From contig MU008172.1 of the NCBI GenBank assembly GCA_010909165.1, forward strand, positions 434,001 through 498,000: 64,000 nucleotides of DNA. Direction: 5' to 3'. This DNA comes from Anthoceros angustus. Taxonomy: Eukaryota; Plantae; Anthocerotophyta. A model generated the notes under the pieces. The model searched no databases. It was not told the origin of the DNA and worked only from the letters and a program-made list of their open reading frames with translations. Positions 16,487 to 41,880 of this stretch are shown here, one piece after another; the stretch's first letter is position 1, and the number at the start of each line of letters is the position of its first letter. A program made the position numbers and the translations under genes.

Positions 16487-19003
16487 ATGGGCGATCAGGC
16501 CAGTGAGATTGTCTACTCGCCTCTGCGGGAAGGTTAGCTGAGCTTCTCCATTAGCCGACTGCGCTTGACAATGTCCTTTTACTGACATTGCTGCAGCTAA
16601 TTTCGTCTCACGTCTCGTCTCCACGGCAGTGAACGAGATCCATGTGCTCCGAAGGTTTCAGAAACGATGGCTTCGGATGGACAAGCTGATCTGGTGGACT
16701 TTGGGAGGAGTGGGATTGGGAATTGGCCTTGGAGCTGCGCTCTCCAATGCAAGCCTCTCCGAACGCGCAGTGGAGCTCATCGGTAGACCACGGCACACAG
16801 GCGCATTTGTTGGCCCCGATTGGTAATTGGCAAGGCTGGATGCATTACCCATGGCTTGTGCAGGTTATCCTGGGGAGCTGCTCATCCGAGCTCTGCAGGA
16901 GCTGGTGCTGCCTCTCATCGTCTTCGCTCTTATGACTGGGGTGCTCAATTTGAGGCACTCTTCCAGCGGGTACTGCCCATTTTGAAGCTTACAGACAAGG
17001 TCATGAAGCCTCCTACAGAGGAGGATATTTGCCTGGTTCCCGTCCACGTTTTGCTGACTCTGCCCGAAAGCTTGGCTCTATTTTTGGCAGAACAGGGCGG
17101 ATAACCAGATGGTCACTTCTGTACTATCTGCTTTCCATGCTGCTGGCAGTGGGCCTTGGAATTGGTCTGGTTTACATTATCAGGCCCGGGAAAAGTGAGC
17201 CCTTCAGTGGTGATGGTGTTGCCGCCTGTTCTCAGAAGAATTCAAGTGTCCAGGCGACGTCGTAAGAGCCCTCACAAACTTATAACCATGTTGTCAACGC
17301 ATGCGATGTGGGCAGGGTGTTTGTTTTCTGCACTCTATTCTCTCTCGCTGTGTATCTCACGCATCTGTTCCCTCTGCAGGCAAAGTTCAGCTGCAGATGG
17401 ATCGACAGTAGAGTCCCTGCTGAACATTGGTCGGGATCTTATTCCCACCAATATTGTTGCAGCTGCTGCCCAGACGAACTATCTCGGCGTGATTTTCTTT
17501 TCCATACTCTTTGCCTTTACAATGAACACAATTGGTAAGAGCATATCCTTTCTAGATCGATTGGAATGATGTGCGTAGGAAGGAGGTTTGTCTATCTGGT
17601 ATACTTGCTCGATATCTTCCTCTTGTCCTTATCAGCTAACCAATTTGCTGGCACTTTCAGGGGAACGCGCGGAGCCCTTAATACAGCTGATTGAACTCTG
17701 CAATGACGTCATTCTTAGGATAGTGAGTATCAACTTCTCAAGGATTGCCAGGGTTCTGTGAACAACTTGAAGTAGAAGGGCTTGTGGCCACTTTACATTT
17801 CAGACCTCCGTTTGCAGATATTTGTAGTAATCGCAACGACGCCTGTTGGTGTGGCATCCCTCATAGCAAGTACGATACTGAAGGCATGCAGCTTGCTCCA
17901 CTTGCTGAGGGCCTTGGGGCTTTATGTGAGCACTATCATGGTTGGGTTTCTGTTGCATTCGACTGTAATATTACCAATCACGTTGTTCCTATTATCACGA
18001 AGCAACTTCATCAAAGTCTTCCGGTGAGCCTCTGCTCAAGTCCAGAGTGCTAATCAGTTGAATCAAAGGGTTTTGCAACTGCGCATGCTAATGTGAGCGA
18101 ATAAACTGATGCATCGCAGGTCATTTATGCCTGCCCTTGTTATGGGATTGGGGACTTCTTCTAGTGCAGCGACAATGCCTGTGACCATGCAATGTGGAGA
18201 GGATCATGGTTGTGAACCAAGCATTGTCAAGTTTGTTATTCCTCTGGGCACAAATATCAACCGGGATGGAGCCGCATTGTATGAAGCCGTGTCAGTCATC
18301 TTCATCTTGCAGGTAAGAAAGGACTTCCCGTTATGATGCATCACTGGCAGAAAGTTCTGAAACTCGACAAGTGACAACAACGTGGACTGTGTGTCTAGGC
18401 ACATGGCTATGAGCTGTCTGTTGGAAATGTCCTAGTGGTAGCGCTCACATCCACCCTTGCGGCCATTGGCGCAGCTTCCATTCCCAATGGGGCCCTCGTC
18501 TCAATGATCACAGTCCTACAGGTCCATTGCTGGTGTCAGTTCAGTTGCAGGGACAAAAATGTTATGTGCTAATCTTGTATGATTGGACTTCTGATTGTGT
18601 TTAGTAGCTCCTGCAATTTGTAACCAGTTTATTGTGCAGGCTCTTGGCTTAAGCCAGTACATCCCCGATGTCTCAATTCTGTACGCAGTGGATTGGTTCC
18701 TTGGCATGTTCCGGACATCTGTTAACATATGGGGGGATGCATGCGCCCTTGTCATCGTTGACACATGGGCAAAGCAGTTTTCAAGGAAGCAGCAGTGGCT
18801 CCCAACTTCACTCAATGCTCCTCTGGTAAGATTAACGATCTTGTGATGGCACATATTTAATGTCGCAACTATTACCCTTCAGACAACAATCTTCACAGAC
18901 TGAAAACTTTATGTGCTGCTGCTCCGGTCAGGATCAAGATGCAAGTGACATGTCATTATCGGACGCTGATCCCAAGAAATGGGTTCTGCAACCGACATCC
19001 TAA
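16487..19003 (+). CDS. Dicarboxylate/amino acid:cation symporter (DAACS/SDF, SLC1-like), multi-exon
   Basis: Exons give YPGELLIRALQELVLPLIV, TNYLGVIFFSILF, HP1 GTSSSAATMP, TM7 NINRDGAALYEAV, HP2 IGAASIPNGALVSM and TM8 DWFLGMFRTSVNIWGD. ATG at 16487, stop TAA at 19001-19003. Confidence 0.92.
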
Positions 19004-19602
19004 TTGATAAAGTGTAAAAGTTTCACCAACATGGGCACATTGCTCGCTGTTGAATGTCTCCTACTTACGTACGTAGCTACATTCGTGGTCTGAGGCACTT
19101 CCAGACCAGATTTGGAAGTGCCACATTCGCAAATTTGTTCCACATTGTGGATTTGCAACTAGCGCGCCCAATGACATGTGCATACGGTGCTTAGATACAT
19201 GCATTACAGTCCTAGTTGAATACCAGTTGAAAGTTTGAAACAAATAAGATGTCAAGTGTTCAATACAGTACGCTTACTTTGCTACTGCAGAGTGCAAACC
19301 TGTGACGACCTATCCATCACATCCATCGAGAGGGGATACGATTAGCATCCAGACAACTGACGCATGCCGGGAAACTAGCTATCAAAGTTGGCAACCAACA
19401 AGCTCCCATGCTCTGCCACCAAAATCATGAGGTCCTACCGCAGACGAACGAAGTAAACAGCAATTCGGAAAAGGACAGCGGTGAAGGGGAGCCAAGGACA
19501 AGTCTCAAGCAACATGTTCCATAGTCAGACGGTAAAGCGTCAAAGTTCCCTCTGAAGTGGTGGTGTTCAAAAACACCAGAAAAGGATTGGAGCTTGGGCG
19601 CC

Positions 19603-20010
19603 CTAAGCAGTTGTGAACTTGGTGACAGCCTTCGTTCCCTCAGATACAGCATGCTTGGCCAGCTCCCCAGGCAAAATCAGCCTCACCGCAGTCTGTATCT
19701 CCCGCGACGTGATGGTGGGCTTCCTGTTGTAGCGCGCAAGCTTCGCGGACTCCTGGGCCAGCTTCTCGAAGATGTCGTTGATGAAAGAGTTCATAATCCC
19801 CATAGCCTTGGACGAGATACCAGTGTCGGGGTGCACCTGCTTGAGCACCTTGTAGATGTAAATCTTGTAAGTCTCCACGCTCTTCTTCACCTTCTTCTTC
19901 TTGGAACCCTCCTTCGGCATGGATGCCGGCTTCTTCTCGCCCTTGGGCTTCATCGGCTTCTTCTCGGCCTTGCCCTTGCCGGCCTTCTGCTCATCAGACT
20001 TGGGGGCCAT
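19603..20010 (-). CDS. H2B: Histone H2B (intronless, 135 aa)
   Basis: MAPK...[42 protein letters not shown]...[26 protein letters not shown]. Confidence 0.99.
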
Positions 20011-20160
20011 GACAGACACCTCGCAAACAGATACGGAAGAGCGAGCACAAGGAACAACACGAACAAGGAAACCTGGCGGCGCAGAATAGCAGAAAGCACA
20101 AGGCAGCTAGAGCGTAAGCTGAAAAAACACGGAATGGAATATCAAGTGGAGGTGGAGGCC

Positions 20161-20200
20161 TTTTATAGAGGACCAGGGCAAGAAGGGATCGCTGACGTGG
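20161..20200 (-). promoter_or_regulatory. H2B promoter: TATA box plus plant histone type-I-like element
   Basis: Minus strand CTATAAAA at 20168-20161, and CCACGTCAGCGATCCC at 20200-20185, close to the plant histone type I element CCACGTCANCGATCCGCG. Confidence 0.7.
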
Positions 20201-23149
20201 AGCGCAGGCTCGGTGTCCAGCTAGGAAAATACCGAGCCAGACACAAGGCTCGGTTGTCCCACGTGGATGCCGCGCCTGTGATACGGATCGGGACGGGCCT
20301 TCTATGTACGCACGCCTTGGGTGTCTCACAATAGCCCGCCGGTTTTGCGCGGGTCAGTTCGAACTTCAAATTTGCCGCTCGGTTCAAATTTCCAACAGCA
20401 GATTGTGAGTTCGATTGCTTTGTAGACTGTAATGAAGAAAACCGCTTTATAAGGTTAACAATAGTACAAGCTACAGTTCAATGGGGATACCCGGTATCGA
20501 ACCGGTATTTTACGTACCCAGTTTCCCAATTTTTCAACTCTATACCTACTCTAATAAATGGGATCCCTCCCTTATTAGGCCTAACCTCGGAGCTCACTCC
20601 CTTCCACAACATATAAAAGGATACCGAAATGGAATAATTTCATTAAGGACCTAGGGAGCTCGCTCCCTTCCACATGTAAAAGGATATGTAAATGGGATAA
20701 TCTCTTAAATGATCATTAAAATACTATTAAAATTTTAATTTAAATTATTTAATATTATATGTACTGCCTATGTAGACTATAGTGCAGAAAACCCCTCTAC
20801 AAAGACAAGGAAAATACAAGACCACCCTGTCAAAGACACCACCTACTTGAGAAGGAACTAGGTGCCCGTATTGCTGGAGTCGGGATATTTGGGCCCAATG
20901 CCGAGAAATTCCAAATTAACGAGGAGTTTTATATCGCTATATAAAAAGGATGGGGTGCCTCCCGTCCAATTTTGTCTCTCTTCAAGGACTAGCGTGCAAA
21001 CATGAGTTCATTGGAACTCCACTGTCAAACACCGCTGAGCTAATCACTACTAGGATGGGGTGCCTCCCATCTCCAGTTCCACGGCATTATAAGGAAGCGT
21101 GATGTAAAATACGTGTCCTCGTCCTCGCACGGTCTGCACGTTTGCCTGTTGTAAGAGTCATACAAGGCTACTCCTGAATGAATCTCTCTTATGCAGGCTT
21201 CAACGTAACTTTGATATATCTATAAAGTCTTTGAAATCGCTAGAAAGAAAAAGAAGTTCTTTCATAACCAGTGATGAAATTTTTTGAAGAAAAACACTTG
21301 AATTACGATTGAGGTGCCACTGCCAATTTCCATGTGGGATCAATCTGTAAAAAAATTGCATTGGGATCGCCTTCTGATTCCAGGTCGATTACGGCCATAA
21401 GCCACGGGCGCATTTCTCAAGCCTCCATAAACTTTGTTTGAATGCAGCCAATCTGTAGGAAGTCGGAGTTGCTTCTACCGATGCAACAGCCTATTTGCGT
21501 GAGGAGTTTCCACTTCAAGCAAACAGATTGTTGAAATTTTTTCATCATATGATGGCCAAACTGATGATGAAGCATGAAAAAATGGTTAAAGATAATCATA
21601 GCTGCGACATAGACCCGTTATTGACCTAGAAGCTATCAGATTTTAGATTTACTTTCTAATCTATAATTAAAGCATACTTCGCTGTCTACACGGCTAGTGT
21701 CAGCTAGGGAACAATTTTCAAGTTGTATAGTTGAAAAAAATGCAAACCCCTATATATTTTCCTAAATAAATTGGACTTGAGTGCTAAAAGAATTGGTTGT
21801 TTACGGGTATCAAAACTTGTGTATCATCGCTAATGCCGGCAACCCTCATGTTCCATCTTTCCTACTCTTTCTGTGTGATGCTCAGGGCAGATTTCCATGA
21901 TAATCCAACCTGGCCGAGGTTGAGAGTACGACTAGCAATACCCTAATTGCATCCCTTGTCGTTATGTGGGAGAAAACCTGGTCGAGCCCAAGTGTCTTCT
22001 CAGCTTTTTTAAGAGAGCCCTATTGTGGCTGGGTGACCCGTATAACATCCTGCTTTCTTTAGTACCTCAACGTTTGACTTATCATAATAGAACTCCCCGC
22101 GAAGGGGCCTAATGTGAAGGTCTTGTATGTTGTTGGTGAGGAAGCTTGACACCTATCAGGCTGGCTTTGGTGTGGAAGTGCATGTATAGGTACGGTGCAT
22201 GGGCACATGCCCTTCCATTTTCATTTTCATGTGCTTGCCGTGCATGGAAAAGTGGTCACCTGACTTAAGAATTTTTTGCAGGCGGAGATAGGAAATGTGC
22301 CTTAAAAGTGTGTAGGGAAAAACAGCTTATTCCTGGATTTTGGGCTTTCCTGTAAAATATTCAAAATTTTCTTGTAAAGACCGGCAAAAACTAAGACACC
22401 AAAACCATGGCCTAACATGCTAGGATCCATGAATATGCCAACTCTTGATCCAACCGTACAACGAGAGTCACGAAAACTAAATTTTATTATCAGGATAATC
22501 CCGTACCTTGTTTGTGGTTTAAAAGGCTGAATTCCATTTACTCACATGCGGGATGGTCTGTGAGCTGTAACATGTACTCCAAAGAGAGAGACGACTTGGA
22601 CATGTATGTAGGATATGTAGTCGTTGCCAAATTTCTGCAACATCCCTCATGTCCTTTCATTATGTTCCCACTCATGTGTGTCGTTCAAGTACATTTAGGC
22701 GACTTTGAACACAACTCAGGTTCTACATACGCACCTTATGTCTCTCACCCGTACACCTCTCTATGGTTGCATTTGGCTTAAACTATTTAAATGATTGTGA
22801 GGAGAGTGTGCCGGCATACCAGCGCATCCCCGTCAAAATCATGTAAATCCTACTCTTAAGGTGCAACATCGTTCTGTCCTATCCGCAAGTTCTGAGATGC
22901 AAATGCGCTCTTACACCGGTATACAATCGCACCACCCTCAACATCGTGCAACTTTTGCCAAAGACCCACTAACGCTATTTAATAAAAAACAATTGATCTT
23001 CATTCCTTGTCTAGCATTTAAACCATGTTCTTTGACAAATGCAAGATTCAGGTAATTCACCAACTAACATCAAAATGTGGCTTCATGACAATTGATGAGG
23101 CCTCTCAGATGGTACTAAGTGTTGTCTTCAAAAGCTACATCATCCTCGT

Positions 23150-25960
23150 CGTTGTTCGCTCTTCCCTAGCCTTGGTTCTCCTAGACTAGCACATCTTCTT
23201 GCATAGAGCGAAGCGTCATAAGGTTTCACCTGATAATTGAACGTGTTTGGGCCTTCAGCTATTTAGCTCGAGTGAGCTCAAACCCATAGGCCAAAACAAA
23301 TTTGTCAGCAATGATCAGCATCTCCACATTCTTCCTCGGCCGTCTAGTGGCGCGCCTACAATGCCTTGTACACTGCCCTATGATACTTCATCTGGTAATA
23401 TCATCTCTTCCATGTACCTTCCGTCAAAAGCGTCTATATTCTATGTCACCCACCAATGAACTTTCATGAAATGTGATTCGCACTGGAAATCTATGTGAAG
23501 CACCTTCGCAATCCAGAAAGGACTATTAGTTGCATCATTCTTGCAAGGGATTGCTATCATATTCCTGGCCGTAATCTCCGAAATATCACCATTGAACCTC
23601 TCTTGCTCTCTTTGTCAGGAACCATTGTTCCGGTAGGTTCTTACATGCATGTCTCGTCGAGGCACTTCTCGCAGCAATGGATGAGGAAGGACTTCAACAT
23701 TCGAAATAGATACAGGTTACCACAGGATCTCTGCTTCTTTTCGATTATACCATCGCCAAGGACTCTTTTATTCCTATTGGGACCCTGAATTTATCGTGTC
23801 CACAATGGCCTCTTGTTCTTCCCAAATCGATTCCCACTACACATCTTCGCCTTCGCCCAAAATGTCTTTTGATTTCTCCTCCAACTTGGCCCGGATAATT
23901 GACAATGACCTTTCAGCATCTCTTTCTTCAGCATGTGCTTTTTTGCTGCTTACTTTCAATTTTCACTGCGCCACTAATGTCTTTGGAAGGACCTTCTGGC
24001 ACATGCTTCAAGAACTTAAGGCCTTCATTGGTGGACTAGTAATTATCTGTTGGATACTGTTTGCCTCGCATCACCGTAATGAAACCGCGGCCCCCCCTCT
24101 CCTCTCGAGTTATTTTGAGCTGATGCTGGAAGGAGATGTTGTGCAACTGCTCCACAGCGGCAACCTGTTGGTAGCCAGCCCCACCAAAAGGGATGGGCCA
24201 AACATACCTTTTGAAATCAGGGACTTCGTGTACCAATACAATCTGCGGATTTGGAGTATAAACATCTTCCAACACAGAGGTGAGTTTGGGCAAGGTAAAA
24301 GCCTGCTTATGTCTTAGCTCAATCGAAAATCTAAGAACATCTACTGTACCCGATCATGGGTGTGCCCAACAAGGAGGAAGCCTACCTTGATCTTCTCAAA
24401 GACTCGCAATGACAACAACATGTTTAGGTAGGCGAACAGAAGGGCGTTTTTATTTTGACCTGCCGTGTTGTCGAGTTGCAAGTACAACACCTTCGTAAGT
24501 CAACCCTCGTAATTCAATATAAAATGTTGTATGACGATGATCGTCAGGTTGGCATTGTTTCTGATATTTCCAAACTCGATGAACAATCTTGTTGACATAG
24601 TATAATTGTAAACAAGACGGCCAACAACATGGACGTCAAGAAGCGGAGTGTCTGCCATGTTCTTTGGAAGATGCATGAAATGTGGAAGCTTTGTTTTTTG
24701 TTAGTCCATGCCGTCTATAGAAAGTCCGACATACCGTGCTGGGTTTGCACAACACTTGATCCGATGCTTCATGCACTTTTCCCTCTCTGCTTTTAAACGT
24801 TTTGTATGGTTTCGCAAATCAGCTTCATGTTCTTCTATACAATCACAAAACCACCAAGCAACGCAACTGTTCAGTATGACAACAAACTTGCAACATGGTA
24901 CTTGTATTAGCAAGTGCGCATTACAATGGCCAAGTGCGCCGGTATACCGATAGTCATGATTTTTAAAAGCAAATGCGTACCTTCATTTTCACGTTCTTTC
25001 TCGCTCCTAATCTTTCATTTAAGGTAGTGGCACGTAGCACATGTTGCAAAACGATTATTTTTCGAGATTGTCATGCCGTGTGACACTAATCTATGCACTT
25101 GGTTTTAGTGTTTGATTAGCATTAATTAATCTGAAATTTTATCTCTTAAGTAAGTAATTAGTATTAATTAATCTAAAGCACTGATGGTAATTAAGTGTTA
25201 ATTAGTGTTAATTATACATGGTTAGCAATAGCTAAGTGGATAAGCACAAGTTATATGCTTTAGCATATTCCTTGCATATTATAGTGTATTCTTAGGATAT
25301 TTCCGGTATATGCTGATGCTAATAGGATATCTTAAGAATATGTCGATGCCAATGGTTAATATATATATAGATCCTTTCACAGAGGACAAACTCAAATCAT
25401 AGCTTGTCCTCTAGAGATGCAATGCAAGAGTGTTGAGAGGAGGCCAAAGCTATGACTCCGAAAGCGATGTGTGAGGAATTTGCGTGTTGTTCTCGTGGGG
25501 AGAGTGTGTTTGTGCCATGATGTGCAAGCTACTCTCTCCTATTGTTATTGGTTTGCACTATACTTGAATATTAGATTTGTTTTGCTTGGTTGTCTGTTGA
25601 GGAAGTACTTTTATGAATTCAAGTGCTTACCTCGTGCAATAGGATTCTCACTTTCGGGAAGTGATTCTGCCCCTCCTAAATGCTTCTCGACAAAGGTGAA
25701 CTTTATCCTTCCCAACTAAAGTCTCCACCTTCACTCTGCCGTGTAAACGCTTCGATGAAAAGAAAAGTGATTGTAAAAATATTTCCCGCTCCCGCCTACA
25801 CATCCTTAGGAAACGGTATCTCAAGTCTCGGAAGGAGGGTCTACCTAGTAGGCGCAAACAACATTTAGTACAACAAGATCTTCTGAAATCACGAGATACC
25901 CGACTTTCCAAGCATTTGAGTTCCGGCACCTTGGATTTCTTTTTTCCTTGTTGCTTGGTG
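23150..25960 (-). mobile_element. Decayed Sola-like DDE DNA transposase with an intron, interrupted by R1
   Basis: N-terminal CCTKCCL...F...ERE.FL...VHLCREAF (25648-25929), NRFATCATC (~25050), SIDGMD.QKTKLPH, LYLQLDNTAGQNKN, KVGFLLVGHTHDRV and C-terminal PFWIAKV...VHWW. Contains stops and frameshifts. Superfamily assignment is from motif memory and is uncertain. Confidence 0.72.
25085..25640 (+). repeat. Dispersed repeat R1 copy 2, inside the transposase remnant
   Basis: Homologous to 13735-14250 (inverted) and 40200-40552. Confidence 0.8.
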
Positions 25961-27064: not shown

Positions 27065-30000
27065 ATGGCGAGAAGAAAACAAGGAATGAAGCTCATGCAA
27101 AGTCAAGAGCAGCAGGCGTCGCAGGAAATAAAACCACAGTGCTCACTGCTATGCCATCTGCCCCTCTTGTTACACCGCAAGCGATTTCGCAGAGGACAGA
27201 TTCTTCCAATGGAAGTGTGCGCACGTCAACATCGAAAGCAAGCTAGGGTAATGTGGAAATGACTGGGGATGCACAATGGAATCCACCAGGAGGAAGTACT
27301 GGAGGTAATGGAACTGGATTGGGTTCGCTCCTGAATCCCTTCAACTTCCAAAAGGTGAGGCAATTGCAGGAAAGTTTGAACAAGCACTTCCTAACAGACA
27401 AGGAGTGGTATGTCACATTGGACGTGGAGCGCTAGCCGGAATACGGAACATGTGGGTGACGGTGGATGGAGTGGATGATGAAATGTTCCTCCACTTTTTG
27501 GTCACTTTACATCCTCAGTTTCATATCATTGATGAGGTAGATAGTCAAATTTGATGTTTGTGCTAAACGCAAACAAGCTGAAGTTCTGGCGTTCTAAGCG
27601 GTTTTACATTAGAAACCCTCTTCGGTTTTCCATTCGTTTAGAAGACGTAAGTGCCTGACATGCATGTTTCAAATTTTTTAGGGTTTGGGTAAGCTCAAAC
27701 TGTGATGAATGACAGGGAGGGGAGCAATTTTATCGAACACCATAGTGGTTTGTTTTTTAAGGTGTCTAATCAAACCGTGTGGAAGTCGTGCCTTGGAGTG
27801 TTGGCGAGGCAATCTACTGCTCAAGTCAAGTTTGCGCAGCCTCTAACAATCAAGGAAGGGGAAGGCATAATGGTCAAAAGCATGCAAGCTGATGTGGAAG
27901 AGGATGAGATCCCAAATCCGCCGTCATCTTTAGAGGATGAAGGCAATTAGCAAAGCTTTGGGTCATCAGCAGAAGCAAGTCTGGACGAGGCTTTAGGTCA
28001 GGGCAGCGGGGATGGGGATGAAGATGAAGATGCAAAAGAGTCTCCCCCGGCGAAGAGAAAAAAGGTGCGCTGGCATACCGGTGCACCTGAGATGAAGAAG
28101 AAGGGAATACAAACAAAATCTCCGTCCAAGATGAGGAGTAGGCAAGCTGGTAAGTCCAAGCATGCTTTCAGCCCTAGCAGGCGACCCAAAAACATGGAAG
28201 AGTTGAATCAGCTCGTTGCTGACTATTATGCAGATTTGACACCAGTGAAAAGGAAGAGAAGGGCGGATGTGGAGCAGTTTGTGGAGAAAAAGGGAAGCGA
28301 GGAAAGATATCGGTGGTTGGTGATGCCGCAATGCTTGTTGTGACGACAGATACAGAGAGACTCCAACAAAGCTATCAAGGCTGGGATAATTTACAGAGGA
28401 TCGGGAACTCTACACACAAGAAGAGGGCTCTTAGCACCACTGTAGATGTGCATGTGGAAACATTGCGGCCAGCTTCTTTTCTAACTACGGATGCTCAAAT
28501 CCAAAAAGTTGATCAGGCCTGGATGAAGTCCTTTGTGAGGCAGATGCAGGTGGGGACTATTAAGGAAGGAGTTTTTCCTCTCCTATGCATGATAGACCCT
28601 AGCGAGTGCAACAACGTGAAAGAGGTGTCTGAGAAGAGGCTGCGAGAAAATGGGTACACACTAGGAGTACTTGGGAGCAATCACTGTTATCAGGCGATGA
28701 AAACCTTATGTGAGATGCACCGAACAGAGGATAAATATCAATGGATGGAGGCACATGGTATGCGGGTTTAACAGAAGCAGAGATGAGAGTCCTAGCAATG
28801 GACCACAATGTCACTGCAGATAGGAGGAAGAAGCTCAACTTCATAGAGCAAGTGCGATATATTCATGACGAGCTTGAAATCCTGCGGCAAGCAGACCCTA
28901 CTGCCAAACAATCACTGCACTGGAAGTTTGATATGTATCGGCATCTTGGTATGGTTGACGAAGATGGAGACATTGAAGATACTGATTTTGTGCTAAAAAT
29001 GAAATGGTTGACCGCAAGACCCTCTCATTAAGGATTGCCAGGTGTGAAGAAAAACAGTGGGAAAATGTGAAAAGGTGTGAACTCCTGGAGCAAGCAAACC
29101 AGGTAGCTCCAAGCAACGTAAAGAGATCAAACGCAAAAAATGGAAGCCTATTCCGGCAGCTCTCATGGGCACCACCAGTAGCTCTAGTAGTGCTCCTCCT
29201 AAGCCAAGAGCTTTGCAGGGAAAACCATTTCGAGCATTCCAAGGAATTCCTCCAGGCGACAAAGGTGAGGATATACTGATTGCGGCAACGCAAAAGGTTA
29301 TCCAGGGGAAAATTCCATTGATGGATATTATGGAAGAGGTGACAAACAATAAGAATCTTCATCTCATCCAAGTTGAATTTATGACTCATTTGAAGTGCAC
29401 GAGTTTTGAGTCCTGCTGCGAATTATATCCTAAGCATACAATAGACAGCGAGCTGGCGAAGTTTCAGACAACATTTTCGAAAGTTGTAAGTATCATTCTT
29501 TCTTTAGTCTTCCTGTGCACGGGCCTCAATGCACGGCGCCGGTATACTGGCGCACTCTTGCGTTCATGTTCTTCTTGCTGATTTATCGCCATTGTCAATA
29601 ATAACCCATCTCTCTCATTTGGAATGCAGAAAGACATAAGTGTTATGGAGTTCCTCCCAATACAATTCCAAAATTATGTACATATGGAGCGCGGATGCGC
29701 ATGAAGGAGGCGAAGTGGGCCCCTGCTAGCCAAGATATAGACGCGGGACTCACTGCTTTCAGGGGGCCCGTGTCTAACGAGACGGTGAAGTATCAAGTCA
29801 TGAAGAAAGACGTGTTGGAGTTAAAAGCTTTCATGCCAGGGCGGCCATACACCCTCTTCTTTTGCGACTTGCCAAGAGGGCGAATGAAGCAGCATCATGA
29901 TACAGAGTTCACAGAGTCGGGTTTGAAGAATATGCTGCAACAGTTCCAAGAGGTCCCAACGTCTAATGTTTTTAGAGTCATTCTTATGAGTGGCGTGGAC

Positions 30001-30851
30001 GACCTGTCCTTGACGAGGGAGGCTCTGAAGCCACTGTGTAGGAAGGGAGCAATTTAAACTTTGGTCTGGGAAAAAACAAATATTCCCCCAAACACAGTCA
30101 TAGTGGAAACTGTGGAGTTCATCACTATCGGCAGCGGAGTACGGAGTATATTGAATGAGCTCAGGGCCTCTTTATTTGCAAAGGCAAATATAACCGATGT
30201 TCTTCTTGGAAATATCCGGCATAGGACAGTCATGAAGAAACTCATCTTCACCACTATTGACAAACAAGTGGTTTGCCCATATCAAAAGCCACAAGGATTA
30301 ATGAGCATGCTCGTAAACATGTTCAACAATGAAAAGGACTGGATGGTAGATGCTTGCGTCGGGTCCAATAGCTTTTTGGTGGCTGCCATCAAAAGAAGAG
30401 GAATGTTGTGGGCATAGAAAATGACCCCAGGTGTGCCATGTACATGCCACAGAGGGTGAACAGCCTTGAGCAGCTTCCGGATGCTGATGAGGAGACCACA
30501 ACAGAGAAGTTTACGAGAGGGGTTTCAAAATTCTGGGCAAATGAAATTTGCGCCGACAGTACCATGAGGAAGTTGCAGGTTTACAGCTTAATGGGTAAGA
30601 AGGGATAGCAGGCACAAAGAACTCAAAGAGAGAGCAGCCCCTCACATGAATTGATGGCGGTGACAGTATGGGATGAGAACGGGACTTTGCCACAGCAAAC
30701 AATAGACCTTACGTTTTCACTTATGAATGTCGAAGTCGACTATTTCGGTGAAGAGGAGGATGATGCAAATCTAGAGAATGTGACATTCGTGCGGAACTCT
30801 GTCGAAAAACAAGCGTACAAAGATACTGCGGCTGATAGTTTAGAAATATGA
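27065..30851 (+). pseudogene. ParB/Srx-like domain + beta-class N4C/N6A DNA methyltransferase-fold fusion gene, copy A (decayed, intron-containing)
   Basis: ParB-like: VDVHVETLRP...KVDQAWMKSFVRQM..G...PLLC...YTLGVLGSNHCYQAM...YAGLTEAEMRVLAMDHN (28430-28810). GT-AG intron at 29486-29629. MTase motif IV-like YTLFFCDLPRG (29866-29880), VWEK, YQKPQGLMSMLVNMFNNEKDWMVDACVGSNSF (motif X/I) and GIENDPR. Contains in-frame stops (TAG 27948; TAA ~30055, where copy B has Gln) and frameshifts. The 5' limit is tentative. Confidence 0.8.
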
Positions 30852-31606
30852 AGTAGGTGTGATACTTTCCTTTTTGTTCAAAATAGCATGATCGTAAGTG
30901 GAGAAATGCCAGTTTTGGCATGAATTGAAAGTCAGTGCGGACTCCTAAACATTCTTCTTGTTTTTGTCCTATAGTTTTATGATTTTTGTCAATTTTCATG
31001 GGAGTCTTCCCAGCATCCAAAAATTTCAAAATCAAAGTGTTTAGGGAGGGTGCGCAAAGTCTAACCTCTATAGTCTTACAGGGCTTTGTAGTCTAAGCCG
31101 TTTTTCTTTGGAAACTAAGTTACTTTAGAAAATTGGAGATCTACTGTTTTGAGGAGATATTGCGATCATGAACATACGATCATGAAAAGTGGGGTGCACA
31201 TACACTGTCTAAAAAACTCCACAATTAAGCAGCATGCGAGCGGACCAGTATTGGGATGGGGTGCCACCCTTTGAGCCCGTGGAAGACCACATGTACACTA
31301 ACCCTCTCAAGTGTCGGGATGAGCGATTTTTTGTTTTGGGTGTGTTAGTATAGCAAAGTGCTTTGAGAATCGTCTGGTAAGGCCTTTTATACGGAATGGT
31401 CCTTGGCCCTTGGTGATAATAATTTTTTCGGACCTTAGGTTTCGACCCCGGATAGGTAGGTCGGAAATAGAGTCCTTGGGTTTTGGTGATTTTTGGAATA
31501 TGAGGTGTCTATATATGCTAGGAATGCTCACAATATGCCAGCTTGGGTAGTCAAGTGGGGAGGTGGCTAGTTCCACCACGGTGGCCGAAGAACGGACGCA
31601 TGCACT

Positions 31607-33990
31607 GTGGGAGTTTACAACCCTAGTGGCGAGGCGGGGGCGCGGTCGGTCGGGCCTGGCGAGAAGGACACACCCAGCACCGCGAGGTCGCGAATTTCGA
31701 GCCGCGTGAGGCGGGGCTGCGGCAAGGCAGCAGCGCGCTGCCTGGGCCGAGTCTGTTTGCGGGGTAGGGCGCGCGTCAATCGTCAGGCGGTGGCGGAGGA
31801 AGAGCAGGGCGAAGGAGGAAAAGAGGCGCCGAGGCAAGAGGGCCCGGTGAGAGAGTGGAAGAAGCGTGCAAGGGTGGTGTTCCCTTTTTCTGACCAGCGT
31901 CTGCAGGTGGGTCGAGTTTTTTTTCTGGGGAAACAAGGAGGAAGGGAGATGGCGCCCCGAGCTGCGGCCGAAATCCCCACCACGCAGTGGCCCAACATGG
32001 ACCACTGGAAGGTGAGAGCTGGCAGCCTGGTGCAGGAGTTGGGGCTGGAATTTATGGAGAAGAAATGGTGTTACGACAGCCCAGCATTGGTGCAAGAGTG
32101 CGCCCGGCAATTGAGAACCAGGTCGCAAGAGGGCGACGCGAGGAAGAGGCCGCAAAACTGGGATTTGGGGCTCTTCGAGGCTGTATGGGAAGCATCGGAG
32201 GATGGGAGCTTGGTAATTGACCCCAGAAAGAAGACCACGAGGCTGCAGCGGCCGCTCATGAAGCACTGGGGAAGTGAGGGTGAACAATGGATGGGTGACT
32301 CGCCAACTCGTGTCTGGCACCGTGGGATTGGCCAAGTGGATTTTGTGTTTCTGAGCGAGTTGGATCATATGGCGCACTACTCGGTCTTTCTTCATGAGGT
32401 GGTTAAGGGTACACAAATCGATTGGGGAGGATGATCTTTGAAAGAGCCTGTGAAGAGAAGGCGAATTTGCTCTCCCTTCCCTCGGCCCTCCTTGATTTCA
32501 CCTTTTCTCGATTCATGTATTCGCGATTCCGTGTCTAACGGAGTTGAAGTCGGTTCCGCCTTCATAGCCGGAAACCGGCCGTGAACTCAAGGTAGAGGAG
32601 GAGGAGTGTAAGGAGGATTCCGGAAGGATTCCATAGCTGGGAATGCGCCTCCCTAGAAGATTCGGATGAAGGTGGGGAGGTTTCCAAGAAGGCGGGCGGC
32701 GTGAGCAGGGGTCGGCGAAAAGGGAAGGACACAGCAGAAGAGGAACCTGACTACACCTAGGGTCACCAGTCGAAATCGGCGGAGCGGGTGAAGGAGGAGA
32801 AAATAAAAGGGAACGACAAGTTGTTCCCCTCGGTCGGGGATGAGTCGCCGCTAGGAGAGATTGGAGCGGAGGAAGCGGTGGCAAACCAACCCCTAGAAGA
32901 AGAGGGGTTAGTTTCGCAGCCAAGTCCGCGACGGAGCTCCGGACATTTTGGCGACATTTCAACGGCCCGTCCGGTGAAGTGGAGATAGGTGACCGCACGT
33001 CGAGAATTGTTGTGGAGGGATGGGCACGAGGACAGCCCAATTCGAGAATCTGAGGCCCGACCGGCCATGGCTCGACGCAGCGATCTCCTCGACCGGTGAC
33101 CATGGCTCTCACCGGCCGAGTGTGGACAACAGGAGAAGTTGCTCAAGGAAAGTTGGAGAGCCCGAAGGCAAGAACAAGGTGGCGGAGGCCTTGAGGAGTC
33201 TGGCGGCCCTATGCAAGGCACAGGCGGCTAAGGGCCATGTCCACCCAGCAGGAGGCCTTAGTGAATCAGTCAAGGGGCGATGCTACAATTGAGGAGCTTC
33301 AAGATGAGGTCTCGCGAGTCCGAGCAGTGGAAACAATGGCGCCTGAGAAATTCAAGAAGCGGAGAGATACAAGCGAGAGAGACGGTTAGGCCGAGTCAAG
33401 AGAGAGGCGGCCAAACCAAGAAAGGCGAACGCCCGGTAGAGCCGAAGCAACCACCGTGGGAAGTAACCACCACGGTGGCTAAACCGCCACCGTCGGAAGG
33501 AGGAACCGAGGTGGGGAAGCCACCGTGAGTACCGCAGATGGGAGGCAGATCCTCGAAACCCAAAGCAGCACCGCCCAGGATTGTCCACGGAGGAGAGGGT
33601 AAGGACCTCAGATCGGAAGGCGTGTGTCTGCGGCGTGGATGAGGATGCTCATGTCCTCGCCGCATGGTGAGCGGGTGCTCACTCTAAACGTGTATGTGGT
33701 TGTTGGGACAGAGGGGCGTAAACCATCGGCTGCACATCCGCCAGGCGTTTACGATGGTTCCTTTTGGCCTACCCTCCATAAGTAGTCTTTGGAGGAGATG
33801 AGCGAGGCGAGGCCAAAGCATGGAGGGAGGAGCACGGTATGGGCATCCGGTGAGGAGGCGGGACAGCGGATGTAGAGGCCCGCAGTGGCGCACGGAAGGC
33901 GCGAGGAAACCGCAGTGCCGAGAGCGAGGTGGAGGTTTTGGGGAAAATCGCTCGGATCGGGCGTGGCGAGCGAGAGGGACCCCTATGGGT
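31607..33990 (+). mobile_element. LTR-retrotransposon-type accessory ORF (plant transposon protein-like domain + coiled coil), frameshifted, copy 1
   Basis: LGLEFMEKKW...LVQEC...W...GTQIDWGRMIFE...ISPFSIHVF resembles extra ORFs of Gypsy elements and is followed by a heptad-rich region. No gag/pol was seen. Confidence 0.45.
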
Positions 33991-35060
33991 CAGAGCTAGG
34001 CAAAGAATCATGAGTGATTTTAGGGGCCGCGACATCATAGGTCCGGGGTTTTGGGGTTAGGGGATGAGATGTTCGAGCTCGTGAGGCTGTCTGCAGCTAG
34101 ATGTATAAGAGACCCTTTGAGTGTCTCTCTTAACAGACGATTTCAGGTGTGAACTTCCGTGTATCGAATCCTCGCGCGGGGTTGATTGGAGACGTCTGGT
34201 CAACACCGAACGGGTTCGGCACATCGTTTTCTCGTCACAAGAAGACCGGGAAGATCCCTGGATGGTCGAGAGCGGAGTGGCCAAGCTCCACGTCTGGGAC
34301 AGCAATTGGTGAGGGGCGTCCGGCGCGCGCTGGAAAGGGGCAAAGGTTGCTGCGGAAAGTCGGGGTGAGATCGCCGGCGAGTGAATCGCCCAAGTACTGA
34401 CCGTGCCTCCTCTGTCTCCCTCCTAGGAAGCTGCCAATCAGAACGTGTTTAATTCTATGAGGGGGGGGTCTGTGTGGCCCGGGGTGAGGTCTATGTGGCC
34501 TGAGAAAGGGGAAGAGAGGGGGTATCCATGTGTGGGGAAAGGTTCTTGGCAGAAGGGGGTGAGCGTGCCGCTATAGGGGAGGGCGGGGAAAATGCGTGTG
34601 CGTTTTGAGAAAACGCGGAGTGATAGAAAGGGCAAAGCGAGTGGTGAGGTCAGTGAGGGTCGGCGCCAGAGCGAGACTTCGCGGTATTCGGGGTCGTGGT
34701 GCCTAATTCTCGGAAAGTTATGAGGACGGACTTCCCTGTGAGAGAATTAGAATAGGTGTGAGTCTAGGTGTGTGTGTGTGTAAGGCCATGACTCTCAGAG
34801 ACCTCGCCCGGGGAGCCGGGTGACAACCAGACAGCCGCGACGCGCGCGCGCGCCCGTGGTGGGAGCCCGCTACAGTGGTTGAATCAACCACTGCGGTGGC
34901 TGAACGCACCACTGCGGTGGCTGAGACCTCCACGGTGGCTGTTTCTGGTAGGGTAAGGATCGGTTGTGGTAGGGCTAGGACCCATAGTTTAGAACATCTT
35001 GACACAAAACCATTCCCTTGGGATCGAATCCTAGGACTATAACGACATAGAGGGTAATGT

Positions 35061-35720
35061 GGCCTCTTTATTTGCAAAGGCAAATATAACCGATGTTCTT
35101 CTTGGAAAATATCCAAGATAGATACCATGAAGAACTCATCTTCACCACTATTGACAAACAAGTGGTTTGCCCATATCAAAAGCCACAAGGATTAATGAGC
35201 ATGCTCGTAAACATGTTCAACAATGAAAAGGACTGGATGGTAGATGCTTGCTGGTCCAATAGCTTTTGGTGGCGCCATCAAAAGAAGAGAGAATGTTGTG
35301 GGCATAGAAAATGACCCTGTGTGTGTACATGCCACGAGGGTGAATGCCTTGAGGACTCGGATGTCGATGAGGAGACCACAATGAGAAGTTTACGAGGGGT
35401 TTCAAAATTGGCAAATGAAATTCTGGCCAGATCATGAGGAAGTTGGGTGTTTACAATTAATGGGTAAGAAGGGATAGCAGGCACAAAGAACTCAAAGAGA
35501 GAGCAGCCCCTCACATGAATTGATGGCGGTGACAGTATGGGATGAGAACGGGACTTTGCCACAGCAAACAATAGACCTTACGTTTTCACTTATGAATGTC
35601 GAAGTCGACTATTTCGGTGAAGAGGAGGATGATGCAAATCTAGAGAATGTGACATTCGTGCGGAACTCTGTCGAAAAACAAGCGTACAAAGATACTGCGG
35701 CTGATAGTTTAGAAATATGA
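35061..35720 (+). pseudogene. 5'-truncated duplicate of the MTase C-terminal half (copy A')
   Basis: LIFTTIDKQVVCPYQKPQGLMSMLVNMFNNEKDWMVDAC and MAVTVWDENGTLPQQ..., nearly identical to 30165-30851. Confidence 0.88.
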
Positions 35721-36499
35721 AGTAGGTGTGATACTTTCCTTTTTGTTCAAAATAGCATGATCGTAAGTGGAGAAATGCCAGTTTTGGCATGAATTGAAAG
35801 TCAGTGCGGACTCCTAAACATTCTTCTTGTTTTTGTCCTATAGTTTTATGATTTTTGTCAATTTTCATGGGAGTCTTCCCAGCATCCAAAAATTTCAAAA
35901 TCAAAGTGTTTAGGGAGGGTGCGCAAAGTCTAACCTCTATAGTCTTACAGGGCTTTGTAGCTTTTCTTTGGAAACTAAGTTACTTTAGAAAATTGGAGAT
36001 CTACTGTTTTGAGGAGATATTGCGATCATGAACATACGATCATGAAAAGTGGGGTGCACATACACTGTCTAAAAAACTCCACAATTAAGCAGCATGCGAG
36101 CGGACCAGTATTGGGATGGGGTGCCACCCTTTGAGCCCTGTGGAAGACCACATGTACACTAACCCCTCTCCGAAGTGTCGGGATGAACGATTTTTTTTTG
36201 TTTTGGGTGTGTTAGTATAGCAAAATGCTTTGAGAATCGTCTGGGTAAGGCCTTTTATACGGGAATGGTCCTTGGCCCTTGGTGATAATAATTTTTTTCG
36301 GTCCTTAGGTTTCGACCCCGGATAGGTAGGTCGGAAATAGAGTCCTTGGGTTTTGGTGATTTTTGGAATACGAGGTGTCTATATATGCTAGGAATGCTCA
36401 CAATATGCCAGCTTGGGTAGTCAAGTGGGAGGTGGCTAGTTCCACCACGGTGGCCAAGAACGGACGCATGCACTGTGGGAGTTTACAACCCTAGTGGCG

Positions 36500-38870
36500 G
36501 AGCGGGCCAACCCGGAGCGCAATCGAGAGAAGGACACACCGTGACCGCGTCTGTGATGTGACGCCGAGCGAGCCGCAGCAGCCGGGCGCGCATGCAATCG
36601 CCGGGCCGAGTCTCGCTACTGCGGCAGTGAGGGGCGCGGCCAATCGTCGAGCCGGTGGCGGCGGAGGAAGGAAACCGCAACTAAGGAGGAAAGAGGCGCC
36701 GAGGCAAGAGGGCCAAGAGGAGTGGAAGAAGCGCAAGGGTGGTGTTCCTTTTTCTCGACTGCAGGGTCGAGTTTTTTCCGGGAAACAAGGAGGAAGGGAG
36801 ATGGCGCCCAGTTGCCGAAATCCACCACGCAAAGGGCCCAACATGGACGGAAGGTGAGAGCCGCACTGCAGTGTGAGCCGGGCCCGGAATTTATGGAGAA
36901 GAAATGGTGTACCAAAGATTGGTGCAAGAGTGCGCCTGCAATTGAGAACCAGTCGCAAGAGGGCGACGCGAGGAAGAGGCCGCAAACGATTTGGGGCTCT
37001 TCGAGCAGAAGGGCGAGAAGCATCGAGGATGGGAGCTTGGTAATTGACCCCGAGAAAGAAGACCGAGCCGCAGCCGGCCCATGAAGTGGGAAGTGAGGGT
37101 GAACAATGGATGGGTGACTCGCCAACTCGTGGTTCGCACCGGTGGGATTGGCCAAGTGGATTTTGTGTTTCGCAACCAAGTTGATCATATGGCGCACTAC
37201 TCGGTCTTTCTTCATGAGGTGGTTAAGGGTACACAAATCGATTGGGAGGATGATCTTTGAAAGAGCCTGTGAAGAGAAGGCGATTTGCTCTCCCTTCCCT
37301 CGGCCCTCCTTGATTTCACCTTTCTCGATTCATGTATTCACAGATTGTGTGTCTAACTGAGTTGAAGTCGGTTCCGCCTTCATGGAAACCGGCCGTGAAC
37401 TCAAGGTAGAGGAGGAGGAGTAAGGAGGATTCCGGAAGGATTCCATAGCTGGGAATGCGCCCCTAGAAGATTCGGATGAAGGTGGGGAGGTTTCCAAGGG
37501 CAAGAAGCGAGGGCGGCGACGATCGAAGGGTCGGCGAAAAGGAAGGACACAGCAGAAGAGGAACCCACGCCTACCTAGGGTCACTGTGTCGAAATCGCAG
37601 AACGCGGGTGAAGGAGGAGAAAATAAAAGGGAACGACAAGTTGTTCCCTGTGCAGTGAGTCGCCGCCGAGAGATTGGAGGCGGAGGAAGCAAGGCTGCCA
37701 ACCCCTAGAAGAAGAGGGGTTAGTTTCGCAGCCAAGTCCGCGACGGAGCTCGGACATTTTTGGCGACATTTCACCGACCGTCCTATCAAGTGGAGATAGG
37801 TGACACCGCCATGGAATTGTTGTGGAGGGGATGGGCATGTGACAGCCCAATTCGAATCAGTTCCCCATGGCCCGACGCAGTGATCTCCTCGACTCAGCCC
37901 ATGGCTCTCACCTGGCTGAGTGTGCAGGGACAACAGGAGAAGTTGCTCAAGGAAAAGTTGGAGAGCCTGGAAGGCAAGAACAACGTGGCAGAGGAGCGCA
38001 GACGGGAGTGCGAAGTGGCCCTATGCAAGGCACAGGAGCAGCTAAGGGCCATGTCCACCCAACAGGAGGCCTTAGTGAATCAGGTCAAGGGGGCGCATGC
38101 TACAATTGAGGAGCTTCAAGATGAGGTCTCGCGAGTCCAGGAGCATGTGGAAACAATGGCGCCTCTGGAGAAATTCAAGAAGTCATGAGAGATACAAGCG
38201 AGAGAGACGGGTTAGCCAGAGTCAAGAGAGAGGCGGCCAAACCAAGAAGGCGGGCAACCAACAGGAGCCAAGCAACCACCGTGGGAAGTAACCACCATGG
38301 TGGCTAAACCGCCACCGGAAGGAGGAACCGAGGTGGGGAAGCCACCGTGAGTACCGCAGATGGGGAGGCAGATCCTCGAAACCCAAAGCAGCACCGCCCA
38401 GGATTGTCCACGGAGGAGAGGGTAAGGACCTCAGATCGGGCGACAGCGCGGCTGGATGAGGATGCTCATGTCCCCGGCCGCTCGCATGGTGAGCGGTGCT
38501 CACTCTAAACGCGTATGTCGTTGTTGGGACAGAGGGGCGTAAACCATCGGCCGCACATCTTGACCGCCACAGGCTACTGCTGGTTCCTTCGAATAGGAGC
38601 TGGCGCCTACCCTCCGCAAGTAGTGCTGGAGGAGATGAGCGAGGCGGAGGCCAGAGCATGGAGGGAGGAGCACACGGTATGGCTGTCCAGTGAGGAGGAG
38701 CGGGACAACGGATGTAGAGGCCACAGGCGCGCAACGTCCACGGGAAGGCGCGAGGAAACCGCAGGCAGCGAGAGCGAGGTGGAGGTTTTGGGGGAAAATC
38801 GCTCGGATCAGAGGCGTGGCCGGCGAGCGAGAGGGACCCCTATGGGTCAGAGCTAGGCAAAGAATCATGA
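36500..38870 (+). mobile_element. Accessory ORF copy 2 (duplicated unit)
   Basis: Collinear with 31607-33990. The coiled coil LKEKLESLEGKNNVAEERRRECEVALCKAQEQLRAMSTQQEALVNQVKGAHATIEELQDEVSRVQEH is open in this copy. Confidence 0.45.
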
Positions 38871-40199
38871 GGGCCACGATTTTAGGGGCCGCGACATCAT
38901 AGGTCCGGGGTTTTGGGGTTAGGGATAGGGTGTTCGAGAGCTCAGCCGAAGTTCATAGCCTAGATGTATAAGAGACCCTTTGAGTGTCTCTCTAATGCAT
39001 TTACTGTGAACTTCCGTATCGAATCCTCGCGGGTTGATTGGAGACGTCGTCGTCAAGACCGAACGGGTTCGGCACATCGCTTTCGCCACAAGAAGACCGG
39101 AAGATCTGGATGGTCGAGAGCGGAGTGGCCAAGCTCCACGTCTGGGACAAAGAATTGGTGAGGGGCGCCCGCTACCGAAAGGCGCAAGGTTGCTGCGGAA
39201 AGTCGGTGAGATCGCCGCTGAGTGAATCGCCTGGCACGACTGCCTCCTCCGCCTCCTCCTAGGAAGCCATCGAACGTGTTTAATTCTATGAGGGGGGTCC
39301 GTGGCCCGGGGTGAGGTCTATGTGGCCCGAGAAAGGGAAGAGAGGGGTATCCATGTGGGGAAAGGTTCTGGCGGTGAGCGTGCCGCTATAGGGGAGGGCG
39401 GGGAAAATGCGTGTGCGCTTTGAGAAAACGCGGAGTGATAGAAAGGGCAAAGCGAGTGGTGAGGTCAGTGAGGGTCGGCGCCAGAGCGAGACTGTGTATT
39501 CGGGTCGTGGTGCCTAATTCTCGAAGTTGAGGACTGACTTCGTGAGAGAATTAGAATAGGTGTGAGTCTAGGTGTGTGTGTAAGGCCATGACTCGAGACC
39601 TCGCCGGGAGCCGGGTGACAAGATCCTGCCAAGGCTCTGTGGTGGAGCCCGCCATGTTGGTTGAATCAACCATCGGTGGCGAACGCACTAACGCGTGGCC
39701 GAGACCTCCACGTGTCGGTAGGGTGGGTAAGGATCGGTTGTGGTAGGGCTAGGACCCATAGTTTAGAACATCTTGACACAAAACCATTCCCTTGGGATCA
39801 AATCCTAGGACTATAACTACATAGAGGGTAATGTGGCCTCTTTGCGCCTTTGGGACGCAAAAACCCCATTCCACATGCCCCTCGACGGACAAATGTTCGA
39901 TTTAAAATCGTCTCACTTCGTGGCCGTACGCGTGTCGACCTCCCTCGTGTGAGATCTTCCATGGCGAGATCATCCTCTAGATAACTAACTAGACACATGA
40001 AGTGGAGCGCACTATCTTTCGACTAGGTTGAGCATTACAAAATGCACACAATAAGCCCATGGTCCAAAAACACTACGTAATAATGTAAGGGCGGCATGGA
40101 AAATACTCGTTAGTATTATTGGGCTAGATTTGAGCAAACATATTGCTCTAGAGCTCTTCTTATCCATGATGGCTTGAGAAAGTAGTTATTAGTGAGACT

Positions 40200-40552
40200 G
40201 TATTCTTAGGATATTTTTGGCATATGCTAATGCCAATAGGATATCTTAGGAATATGTCGTTGCCAAGGGCTAGTGTATATAGACCCTTTCACAGAGGATA
40301 AGCTCAGATCATAGCTTGTCCTCTAAATATGCAATGCGAGAGTGTTGTAAGGAGGCCAAAGCTATGACTCCAAGAGCGATGTGTGAGGAATTTGCGTGTT
40401 GTTCTTGTGGGGAGAGTGTGTTTGTGCCACGACATGCGAGCTACTCTCTCCTATTGTTATTGGTTTGTACCTATACTTGCATATTAGATTTGTTTTGCTT
40501 GGTTGTCTGTTGAGGAAGTGCTTATATGAATGCAAATGCTTACCTCGTGCGA
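40200..40552 (+). repeat. Dispersed repeat R1 copy 3
   Basis: Homologous to 25285-25640. Confidence 0.8.
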
Positions 40553-41880
40553 TATGACCAATGTAGGAGGCCATGCAGCGTGCGAATGTTAACCAAGGGA
40601 CAATGATTGTGCACATGGAGCGGCAGGGCATAGACGCATCTCTTCCGCAGTCTTGGCCTAAAGTTGTAATGTCCTCTAGTTTTGTGTTCGATTATGGTAT
40701 TTCGATGAGAGCAATTGAAAGTTTGTTGGTCTCCTCTTCGATGTTTCGTATTGTGTGCATTTGCTTGCACCCTAGCTAGCTGCATGTGAAAATTAGCTCA
40801 CTTTGTTTCTGATCGTTAAACTCACTAGTGTTGATTGAAGGAAAGAAACGGGGGTGCCCTTGGACGATTGGTTTTGTGCCGATTGGCTTAGCAGTTTAAG
40901 ATGTGGGTGGTTTCAGGTATGTTATACCTCATTGGATGCAGAATTCTTAGGAGAATCCTTGTTCTAATTTTTCCAAAATTAAATTTCACTTATTTGGACC
41001 TAAAAAATCTTAAAAAGAGATTTCTATAAATTTTCATCCATCAAATAGCTCAAAAGGGACCGTGGTTGAGACAAATCTTGGCCTACTGGGGAAGTGAGGA
41101 TATAACATCCTCAAGGTAATTAGCAACGTCCTCGAACATGTCCACATCATATTGTAGCAACGAGCCATAAAGTGCTGCAAGAGGATCGGAAGTATGTTAA
41201 GCACCTCATCTCGGCCCTTATACACACCATACGTGCGGAGTTCCGATGTAGGAATGTCTCTTTACCACACATACACTGCGACGTAAACCTCACCGATCTT
41301 TGATCTATTATTGGCTTTTGAGCGGGGTGCAGGGGCATCGCCGGACACAGGCGGTTGGCAGTAAACGTGTTATTATAATCTAACGCATAAAGGCAAGGCA
41401 GGAGGGAGAGATGATGGAAGAGAGAAGATGGGCAGAGAACACCACGGGCATGTCAGTGGGCCCCACACCTGGCCAGCTAATTCTACGCTTTGTTCTTGAC
41501 CCGCCCGGGACTGCCGGACAACGAGGGCCCATTTCGGTGAATTAGACGCGTTGTGTGCCTGGTCTCGACACCACCTTTATCTTGAATTGACGAGGATCTT
41601 CCTTTTCCTTTTGAACCCGCCGGTTTATTGATTGAACAAGGGGGTGTATTAGATAAAAGACTCTGGAAGGTGTCGGTCGGGGACCGACCAATACAGGTTA
41701 GTATGTTCCACGGGACTTGTAACATACGGCAGTAAGGACATGAAGGTTCCACACATCATGTGCTTTCCCTCACATAGGGTACGTTTCACAAGGAAGTGTT
41801 TGCTCTGCAATCTAAGACAGCTTAGTTATCACCTGAGATCCACGTTGCTTCTACTGGTCTGTACAAAGCAAATAGGTACG

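Follow-up and report, generated by a model that had tools for sequence, protein, structure and literature searches.

A decayed gene at 27950-30851 in a 64,000-nucleotide (nt) stretch of the Anthoceros angustus genome (contig MU008172.1, positions 434,001 to 498,000; the whole stretch is called the window here, and its coordinates are used throughout) is very probably, at a rough 0.85, a pseudogene copy of an accessory gene of a Sola1-type cut-and-paste DNA transposon. The intact version of this family has an N-terminal charged region, a module of ParB/Srx fold, a linker, one conserved intron and a beta-class amino-methyltransferase (MTase) domain, and is transcribed divergently from a DUF7869/Sola1 transposase. 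An earlier sequence-only reading of this DNA had called 28313-30851 a plant gene; its domains and its intron stand, but an intact gene does not, and we regard the segment as a pseudogene that belongs to a decayed DNA transposon of Sola1 type. The parts of this copy (copy 1) and the neighbouring transposase remnant are as follows.

23230-25923 (-): decayed transposase of DUF7869/Sola1 type, with the blocks IDGMD*QKTKLPHF, LYLQLDNTAGQNKN and VGHTHD; at least six in-frame stops
27950-28343 (+): probably the charged, low-complexity N-terminus of the ParB-MTase gene, frame 0, from the three-frame translation
28313-28771 (+): ParB-like domain, first half (VETLRP strand, PLL, YTLGVLGSNH..A), frame 2, by BLASTP against the intact relative L018
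28741-29031 (+): ParB-like domain, second half (YAGLTEAEMRVLAMDHN...IEQVRYIH), frame 1, past the frameshift at ~28750, by BLASTP against L086
29004-29485 (+): linker, frame 0 followed by frame 2 (frameshifts at ~29000 and ~29180), by homology to the linkers of L001 and L006
29486-29629 (+): spliceosomal intron of 144 nt, GTAAGT...TGCAG, by consensus sites; position conserved in L006 and copy 2
29630-30054 (+): second exon, with the start of the MTase domain, a frameshift at ~29695 and motif IV (DLPRG, 29866-29880), by alignment and motif census
30055-30057 (+): in-frame stop within the MTase domain (CRKGAI*TLVWEKTN), by translation and alignment
30058-30395 (+): MTase W.K.N block, motif X (YQKP) and degenerate motif I (GSNS), by Pfam and PHROG matches and alignment
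30390-30851 (+): motif II (RNVVGIEND) and C-terminal extension, after a -1 frame change, with a stop at 30606-30608, by translation and alignment

Every ParB-like and MTase motif that the sequence-only reading had listed is present in the plus-strand translation of 28313-30851, scattered across three reading frames. The ParB-like core reads VDVHVETLRP, DQAWMKSFVRQMQVG, FPLL and YTLGVLGSNHCYQA in frame 2 and continues in frame 1, and the MTase part contributes FFCDLPRG, VWEKTN and YQKPQGLMSMLVNMFNNEKDWMVDACVGSNSF, while motif II (RNVVGIENDP) lies in yet another frame after a further frame change. The damage, which had been understated, amounts to about six frameshifts (~28320, ~28750, ~29000, ~29180, ~29695 and ~30390) and two in-frame stops at positions where relatives carry residues. 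Also, motif I is degraded to GSNS, as against GSGS or GSGT in intact relatives. Because of the frameshifts, the stops and the degraded motif I, copy 1 is a dead pseudogene and no working plant gene.

The properties of the family were therefore read from intact relatives. The best-preserved piece in the window, 185 amino acids (aa) of a second copy of the gene (copy 2; minus strand, 63084-63638), was used as a phmmer query against 1.84 billion proteins and returned nine proteins (best E 7e-14), among which P0002, P0004, P0005, P0006 and P0009 hold intact MTase open reading frames (ORFs). When metagenome contigs were scanned with an alignment built from these relatives, 80 loci (L-numbered) emerged; at about 20 of the 80 the MTase is preceded, on its own strand, by an ORF of 470-565 aa that is homologous to the ParB-like pieces of the window. 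In single BLASTP comparisons these pieces matched L018 (E 2e-9) and L086 (E 3e-11), and by tblastn the second half of the ParB-like domain matched L001 (about 2e-9) and L022 (about 2e-8). The phmmer and BLASTP matches lie well beyond what chance would give. L006 has an acidic and basic N-terminus ahead of its ParB-like part similar to the charged region of copy 1. A word-indexed protein search with P0002 found only three Logan proteins; with the 185-aa MTase piece and the 152-aa ParB piece as queries it found nothing, its length filter shutting out full-length relatives. A tblastn search against phage genomes also found nothing.

The intron of copy 1 divides the linker from the MTase exon, with its donor AAAGTT/GTAAGT at 29486 and its acceptor TGCAG/AAAGAC at 29629. 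Copy 2 has an intron at the same position (about 63943-63642, minus strand), and L006, from another organism, has a GTAAGT...TGCAG intron at the homologous codon (about 5200-5310). This conservation of position across copies and in another organism indicates that the gene has long been resident in eukaryotes, and it bears out the spliceosomal intron claimed earlier for the linker. A horizontal origin of the gene, also proposed earlier, is plausible.

The methyltransferase assignment is carried mainly by the relatives. Taken alone, the copy 1 piece matches Pfam N6_N4_Mtase (PF01555) at E 3.5e-4, with a sub-threshold 21 bits against a cut-off of 26.7, and matches a PHROG methyltransferase at E 1.3e-7. 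The intact relatives P0002 (30 bits) and P0009 (47.6 bits) score above the Pfam gathering score, a sequence search of the PDB with P0002 matches beta-class MTases, and the alignment has the beta-class motif order IV-X-I, as D(L/I)P(R/Y)G, YQKP and GSG. Further, an AlphaFold2 (AF2) model of P0002 residues 60-335 (predicted local distance difference test score, pLDDT, 80; predicted template modelling score 0.84) has CcrM, M.MboIIA, M.BceJIV, M.RsrI, M1.HpyAVI, rotifer N4CMT, TTHA0409 and M.PvuII as its top Foldseek matches in the PDB (E 1.8e-12 to 8e-9 for these beta-class amino-MTases). The models thus give the intact family version the fold of a beta-class S-adenosylmethionine (SAM)-dependent amino-methyltransferase.

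For the N-terminal module, an AF2 model of L018:1223-1972, part of an intact 550-aa ORF, reached a pLDDT of 79. Its top 47 PDB matches consist almost entirely of Noc, ParB, PadC, Srx, KorB, pNOB8 ParB, SbnI and Atu1540 (E from 1.7e-5, probability up to 1.00), and against the Swiss-Prot AlphaFold library the matches are Noc and ParB throughout. Template modelling scores are low over the whole model (0.25-0.37) and reach 0.5-0.66 against the small Srx domain, a pattern to be expected where a core is shared and the helical parts are placed differently. The pieces from the window map onto residues 80-175 of this model. On this modelling the N-terminal module of the intact relatives takes a ParB/Srx fold. 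As regards the cytidine triphosphate (CTP)-binding GERR box and the ENLQR-type box, the sequences are GGSHSAEARR and AWDHN.DN.YR in the family and GSNHCYQA and AMDHNVTADRR in the window, with no GERR box; a sequence search of the PDB with the 152-aa ParB piece of the window gave no match. Separately, language-model features of the 28313-28768 protein place it nearest to Atlas clusters of fungal DUF3723 proteins (score 0.95), a hint that DUF3723 may be ParB-like too.

Homology and the modelled folds of intact relatives thus agree with the earlier claim of a ParB/Srx-like domain fused to a beta-class N6_N4 amino-MTase. The sequence-only reading had staked itself on the recovery of these two folds and of a Rossmann SAM site; both folds were recovered in the models of relatives. 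Its proposed profile searches gave a divided answer, the intact relatives passing for N6_N4_Mtase but not for Pfam ParB_N.

The link to Sola1 comes from the neighbouring gene. The transposase remnant lies head-to-head with copy 1 (transposase on the minus strand, ParB-MTase on the plus strand), and it is 58% identical over 135 aa (tblastn) to a 500-aa ORF of L005 that matches Pfam DUF7869 at E 2e-50. Its N-terminal Cys-rich motifs match ORFs upstream of the L006 ParB-MTase gene. DUF7869 ORFs adjoin ParB-MTase genes at L005 (convergent), at L053 (divergent, the same arrangement as in the window) and probably also at L006. The transposase of the Ectocarpus element Sola1-1_Ec32 has the blocks MMDGANQ..VVP, VQVDNTVAENKN and MMVGHTHIQIDQIFS, corresponding to IDGMDQ..LPH, LQLDNTARENKN and LLVGHTHDQIDQMFS in L005, so that the shared Sola1 blocks are DG.(D/N)Q, (V/L)DNT..ENKN and VGHTH.QIDQ.FS; the remnant in the window holds decayed forms of them. 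A literature search for DUF7869 found no paper.

The gene is also amplified, as had been claimed: the window holds two copies and a partial duplicate. Copy 2, and the sites at which the two copies share a frame change, are located as follows.

62560-64000 (-): copy 2 of the ParB-MTase gene, truncated by the end of the window and frameshifted; DLPRG at ~63470, YQKP and GSG lost
30380-30395 (+) and 62950-62960 (-): shared frame-change sites of copies 1 and 2

Copy 2 is dead as well; its motif I reads GIGI, as against GSGS or GSGT in intact relatives. The two copies are 64% identical in DNA, and their differences fall 70/47/114 on codon positions 1/2/3 (chi-square about 30). Because of this skew, most of the divergence between them accumulated under purifying selection, with the lesions arising late. 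Both copies require a -1 shift within the same few codons between motifs I and II, in a purine run, a site at which relatives from other organisms all read through. Downstream of it only 19 codons can be aligned (differences 4/2/10), and the shift may reflect independent slippage, an inherited lesion or recoding.

Several observations weigh against the assignment to a Sola1 accessory gene with ParB-like and MTase domains. Pfam ParB_N (PF02195) matches neither the window pieces nor the nine intact relatives, a search of PDB sequences with the ParB family profile gave no match, and the surroundings of copy 1 showed no palindrome or parS-like array. The canonical motif IV, (D/N/S)PP(Y/F/W/H), is absent from both window copies, which have DLPRG instead. 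The identity between the L005 and Sola1-1_Ec32 transposases, 25 of 52 residues in one block, was counted by eye and is unscored. Terminal inverted repeats (TIRs) and a 4-bp target-site duplication (TSD) were sought as the mark of Sola1; a comparison of 14200-23600 with 30800-42000 gave no inverted repeat, and no TSD was found for copy 1. This is weak evidence because the copy is decayed, though it leaves the linkage of the two genes resting on adjacency, orientation and recurrence elsewhere. It also gives room for a view in which the two genes are unrelated neighbours, the MTase gene either being carried by some other element or standing free as an amplified gene, beside a dead Sola1 copy. Such a view could draw on the lack of TIRs or a TSD delimiting a single element, on the 0.5-kb repeat and 2 kb of unassigned DNA that separate the genes, and on the convergent rather than divergent pair in L005. 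We nevertheless consider it improbable, as the same gene types adjoin in L005, L053 and probably L006, all from other sources, and occur together in the Ectocarpus element Sola1-1_Ec32 (PMC12477816). Less credible still, and very unlikely in our estimate, is a gene that remains functional as a host-domesticated DNA modifier, its frame changes being further introns, recoding or assembly errors. The -1 frame change common to both copies, with downstream codons that still look selected, would fit such a gene, but the frames overlap at the breaks and leave no room for introns, and the two stops replace residues conserved in relatives. In addition, motif I is degraded in both copies, copy 2 is without YQKP, the adjoining transposase carries its own stops, and some eight lesions within 2.9 kb exceed what sequencing error would produce. 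A dead accessory gene of a decayed Sola1-type transposon accommodates these observations best.

A separate question is what the lineage of the window copies encoded when intact. Among 26 family sequences motif IV reads DIPYG in 18, DIPHG in two and DLPRG in six, the last being both window copies and L001, L003, L004 and L006 (from one other sample), intact ORFs included. With DLPRG in place of (D/N/S)PP(Y/F/W), methyl transfer to DNA is unassured, and the chemistry of this clade may be altered or lost. The clade keeps motifs X, I and II and may comprise enzymes with altered target contacts or SAM-binding pseudo-enzymes. It is possible, though we would not favour it, that the clade is a catalytically dead pseudo-methyltransferase that keeps SAM and DNA binding and serves the transposon as a DNA-binding or regulatory factor tethered by ParB, and not as a writer. 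The change of the motif IV aromatic residue to Arg and of the first Pro to Leu in six of six DLPRG sequences, intact ORFs among them, points in this direction, as do sister lineages that retain DIPYG or DIPHG. Against it, selection in P0002, P0004 and P0005 has preserved motif I (GSGS/T), the acidic residue of motif II, motif X (YQKP) and, within motif IV, the Asp and Pro, the pattern expected of an active enzyme. A more far-reaching proposal, to which we give a low though not negligible chance, is that in land plants the Sola1 elements bear an amino-methyltransferase, tethered by ParB and maintained by selection, in which the catalytic loop has gone from a DPPY type to DLPRG. It would have gained a new target or chemistry, on DNA or otherwise, or become a SAM-binding pseudo-enzyme that marks or shields transposon DNA, and the frame change common to both copies would mark a site of recoding, not two separate accidents.

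Around these genes the window holds further duplications and repeats.

30165-35069 and 35061-39843 (+): two tandem units of about 4.9 kb, 86.6% identical
13734-14206 (A, inverted), 25146-25644 (B, +) and 40199-40557 (C): three copies of an interspersed repeat of ~0.5 kb, 80-89% identical

The tandem duplication has its start within the MTase gene, so that the gene's 3' part occurs a second time at 35061-35756. The units contain blocks of up to 300 nt at 100% identity (for example 30588-30887 and 35457-35756), which suggests gene conversion or an assembly effect. In the GC-rich, G-skewed body of the duplicated unit (31300-35000) there is no ORF with a Pfam match and no recognisable gene. The ~0.5-kb repeat, which ends in ...GTGCTTACCTCGTGCAA, was considered as the TIRs of the element and rejected, as copy B lies within the transposase gene and the flanks show no duplication. 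The interval between A and B (11.9-kb spacing) contains a histone gene and no ParB-MTase. Because copy B sits between two N-terminal motifs of the transposase gene, we take the sequence to be, most likely, an interspersed repeat with no relation to the element. At 19603-20019 (-) there is an intact ORF for a plant-type histone H2B whose N-terminal tail is rich in lysine; the transposase remnant has its 3' end ~3 kb away, and the contig collection has no record of exactly this histone protein. A tandem array at 61814-62041 (56-nt unit, 4.1 copies, 98% matches) lies ~500 bp beyond the 3' end of copy 2. An Rfam search of the window gave no match.

Two of the related loci have additional genes. 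L006, a 16-kb contig, holds an Ulp1-type Peptidase_C48 ORF (11918-12892, -) and a RecQ-like helicase fragment (15394-15961, +), which may be further cargo of the element. In L004 two paralogous ORFs of 190-230 aa (3361-4050 and 4534-5091, +), of unassigned family, lie upstream of an intact DLPRG-type MTase ORF and occupy the place of a recognisable ParB-like part.

In intact copies of the element, the ParB-like module would bind the DNA of its own element and bring the MTase domain to it, and N6-methyladenine or N4-methylcytosine would be placed there. Such self-marking might time transposition or blunt silencing by the host. In the window both genes of the element are now dead, and the 4.9-kb tandem duplication arose later, copying the 3' part of the MTase gene.

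Bacterial and eukaryotic counterparts exist for the separate parts of the protein. The bacterial and phage beta-class amino-MTases of PF01555, such as CcrM, M.MboIIA, M.RsrI, M1.HpyAVI and M.PvuII, share the fold, the motif order IV-X-I and motifs X, I and II, whereas the window family has a non-canonical motif IV and a eukaryotic intron, is fused at its N-terminus to a ParB-like part through a long linker, and resides in a eukaryotic transposon. The N4CMT of bdelloid rotifers is likewise a bacterial-type beta-class amino-MTase fold in a eukaryote (matches to 8s9m and 8s9o), a likeness that is structural; the present family differs in being transposon-borne and ParB-fused. The rotifer enzyme is a host gene, fused to a chromodomain, and silences transposons. 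With the CTP-dependent DNA clamps ParB, Noc and KorB of bacteria and with sulfiredoxin, the N-terminal module shares its fold and a GG.H loop followed by an LT..EA..LA..HN helix; unlike the clamps, it lacks the GERR box and a Pfam ParB_N match.

The closest known system is the 21.5-kb Sola1-1_Ec32 of Ectocarpus, which encodes, on the strand opposite to the transposase, a 1104-aa protein with ParB-like and N4mC/6mA-type MTase domains (Dinatale et al., 2025; PMC12477816). That protein was proposed to bind and modify its own element, and the best blastp match of the Sola1-1_Ec32 transposase was Sola1-1_PPa (PMC12477816). Both systems pair a ParB-like and N4C/N6A MTase protein with a Sola1 transposase on the opposite strand and have the catalytic blocks of the transposase in common; the accessory proteins are likened by description, and the transposase blocks were compared by sequence. 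The host here is a land plant and not a brown alga, the window copy is dead, and its motif IV is DLPRG. The accessory genes PAG2 and PAG3 of red-algal Plavaka elements encode a ParB-like domain fused to a 2OG oxygenase and an N6-MTase fused to a SET domain (Petroll et al., 10.1101/2025.02.11.637652). These too are transposon-borne accessory proteins with ParB-like and DNA-modifying domains, but in separate genes and in a different transposon superfamily. The sequence-only reading had left room for an undescribed gene; its kind has already been published. The pairing of a ParB-MTase gene with Sola1 is known (PMC12477816), and the copy in the window is a new member of that kind from a land plant.

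Being dead, copy 1 is unsuitable for functional study. What it adds is the land-plant occurrence, evidence of purifying selection during the diversification of the family, and a conserved departure from the canonical catalytic motif. A transposon equipped with an enzyme that both binds and modifies DNA could place epigenetic marks on itself, which bears on the origin of 6mA and 4mC in eukaryotic genomes and on the ways in which elements escape silencing or turn it to their use.

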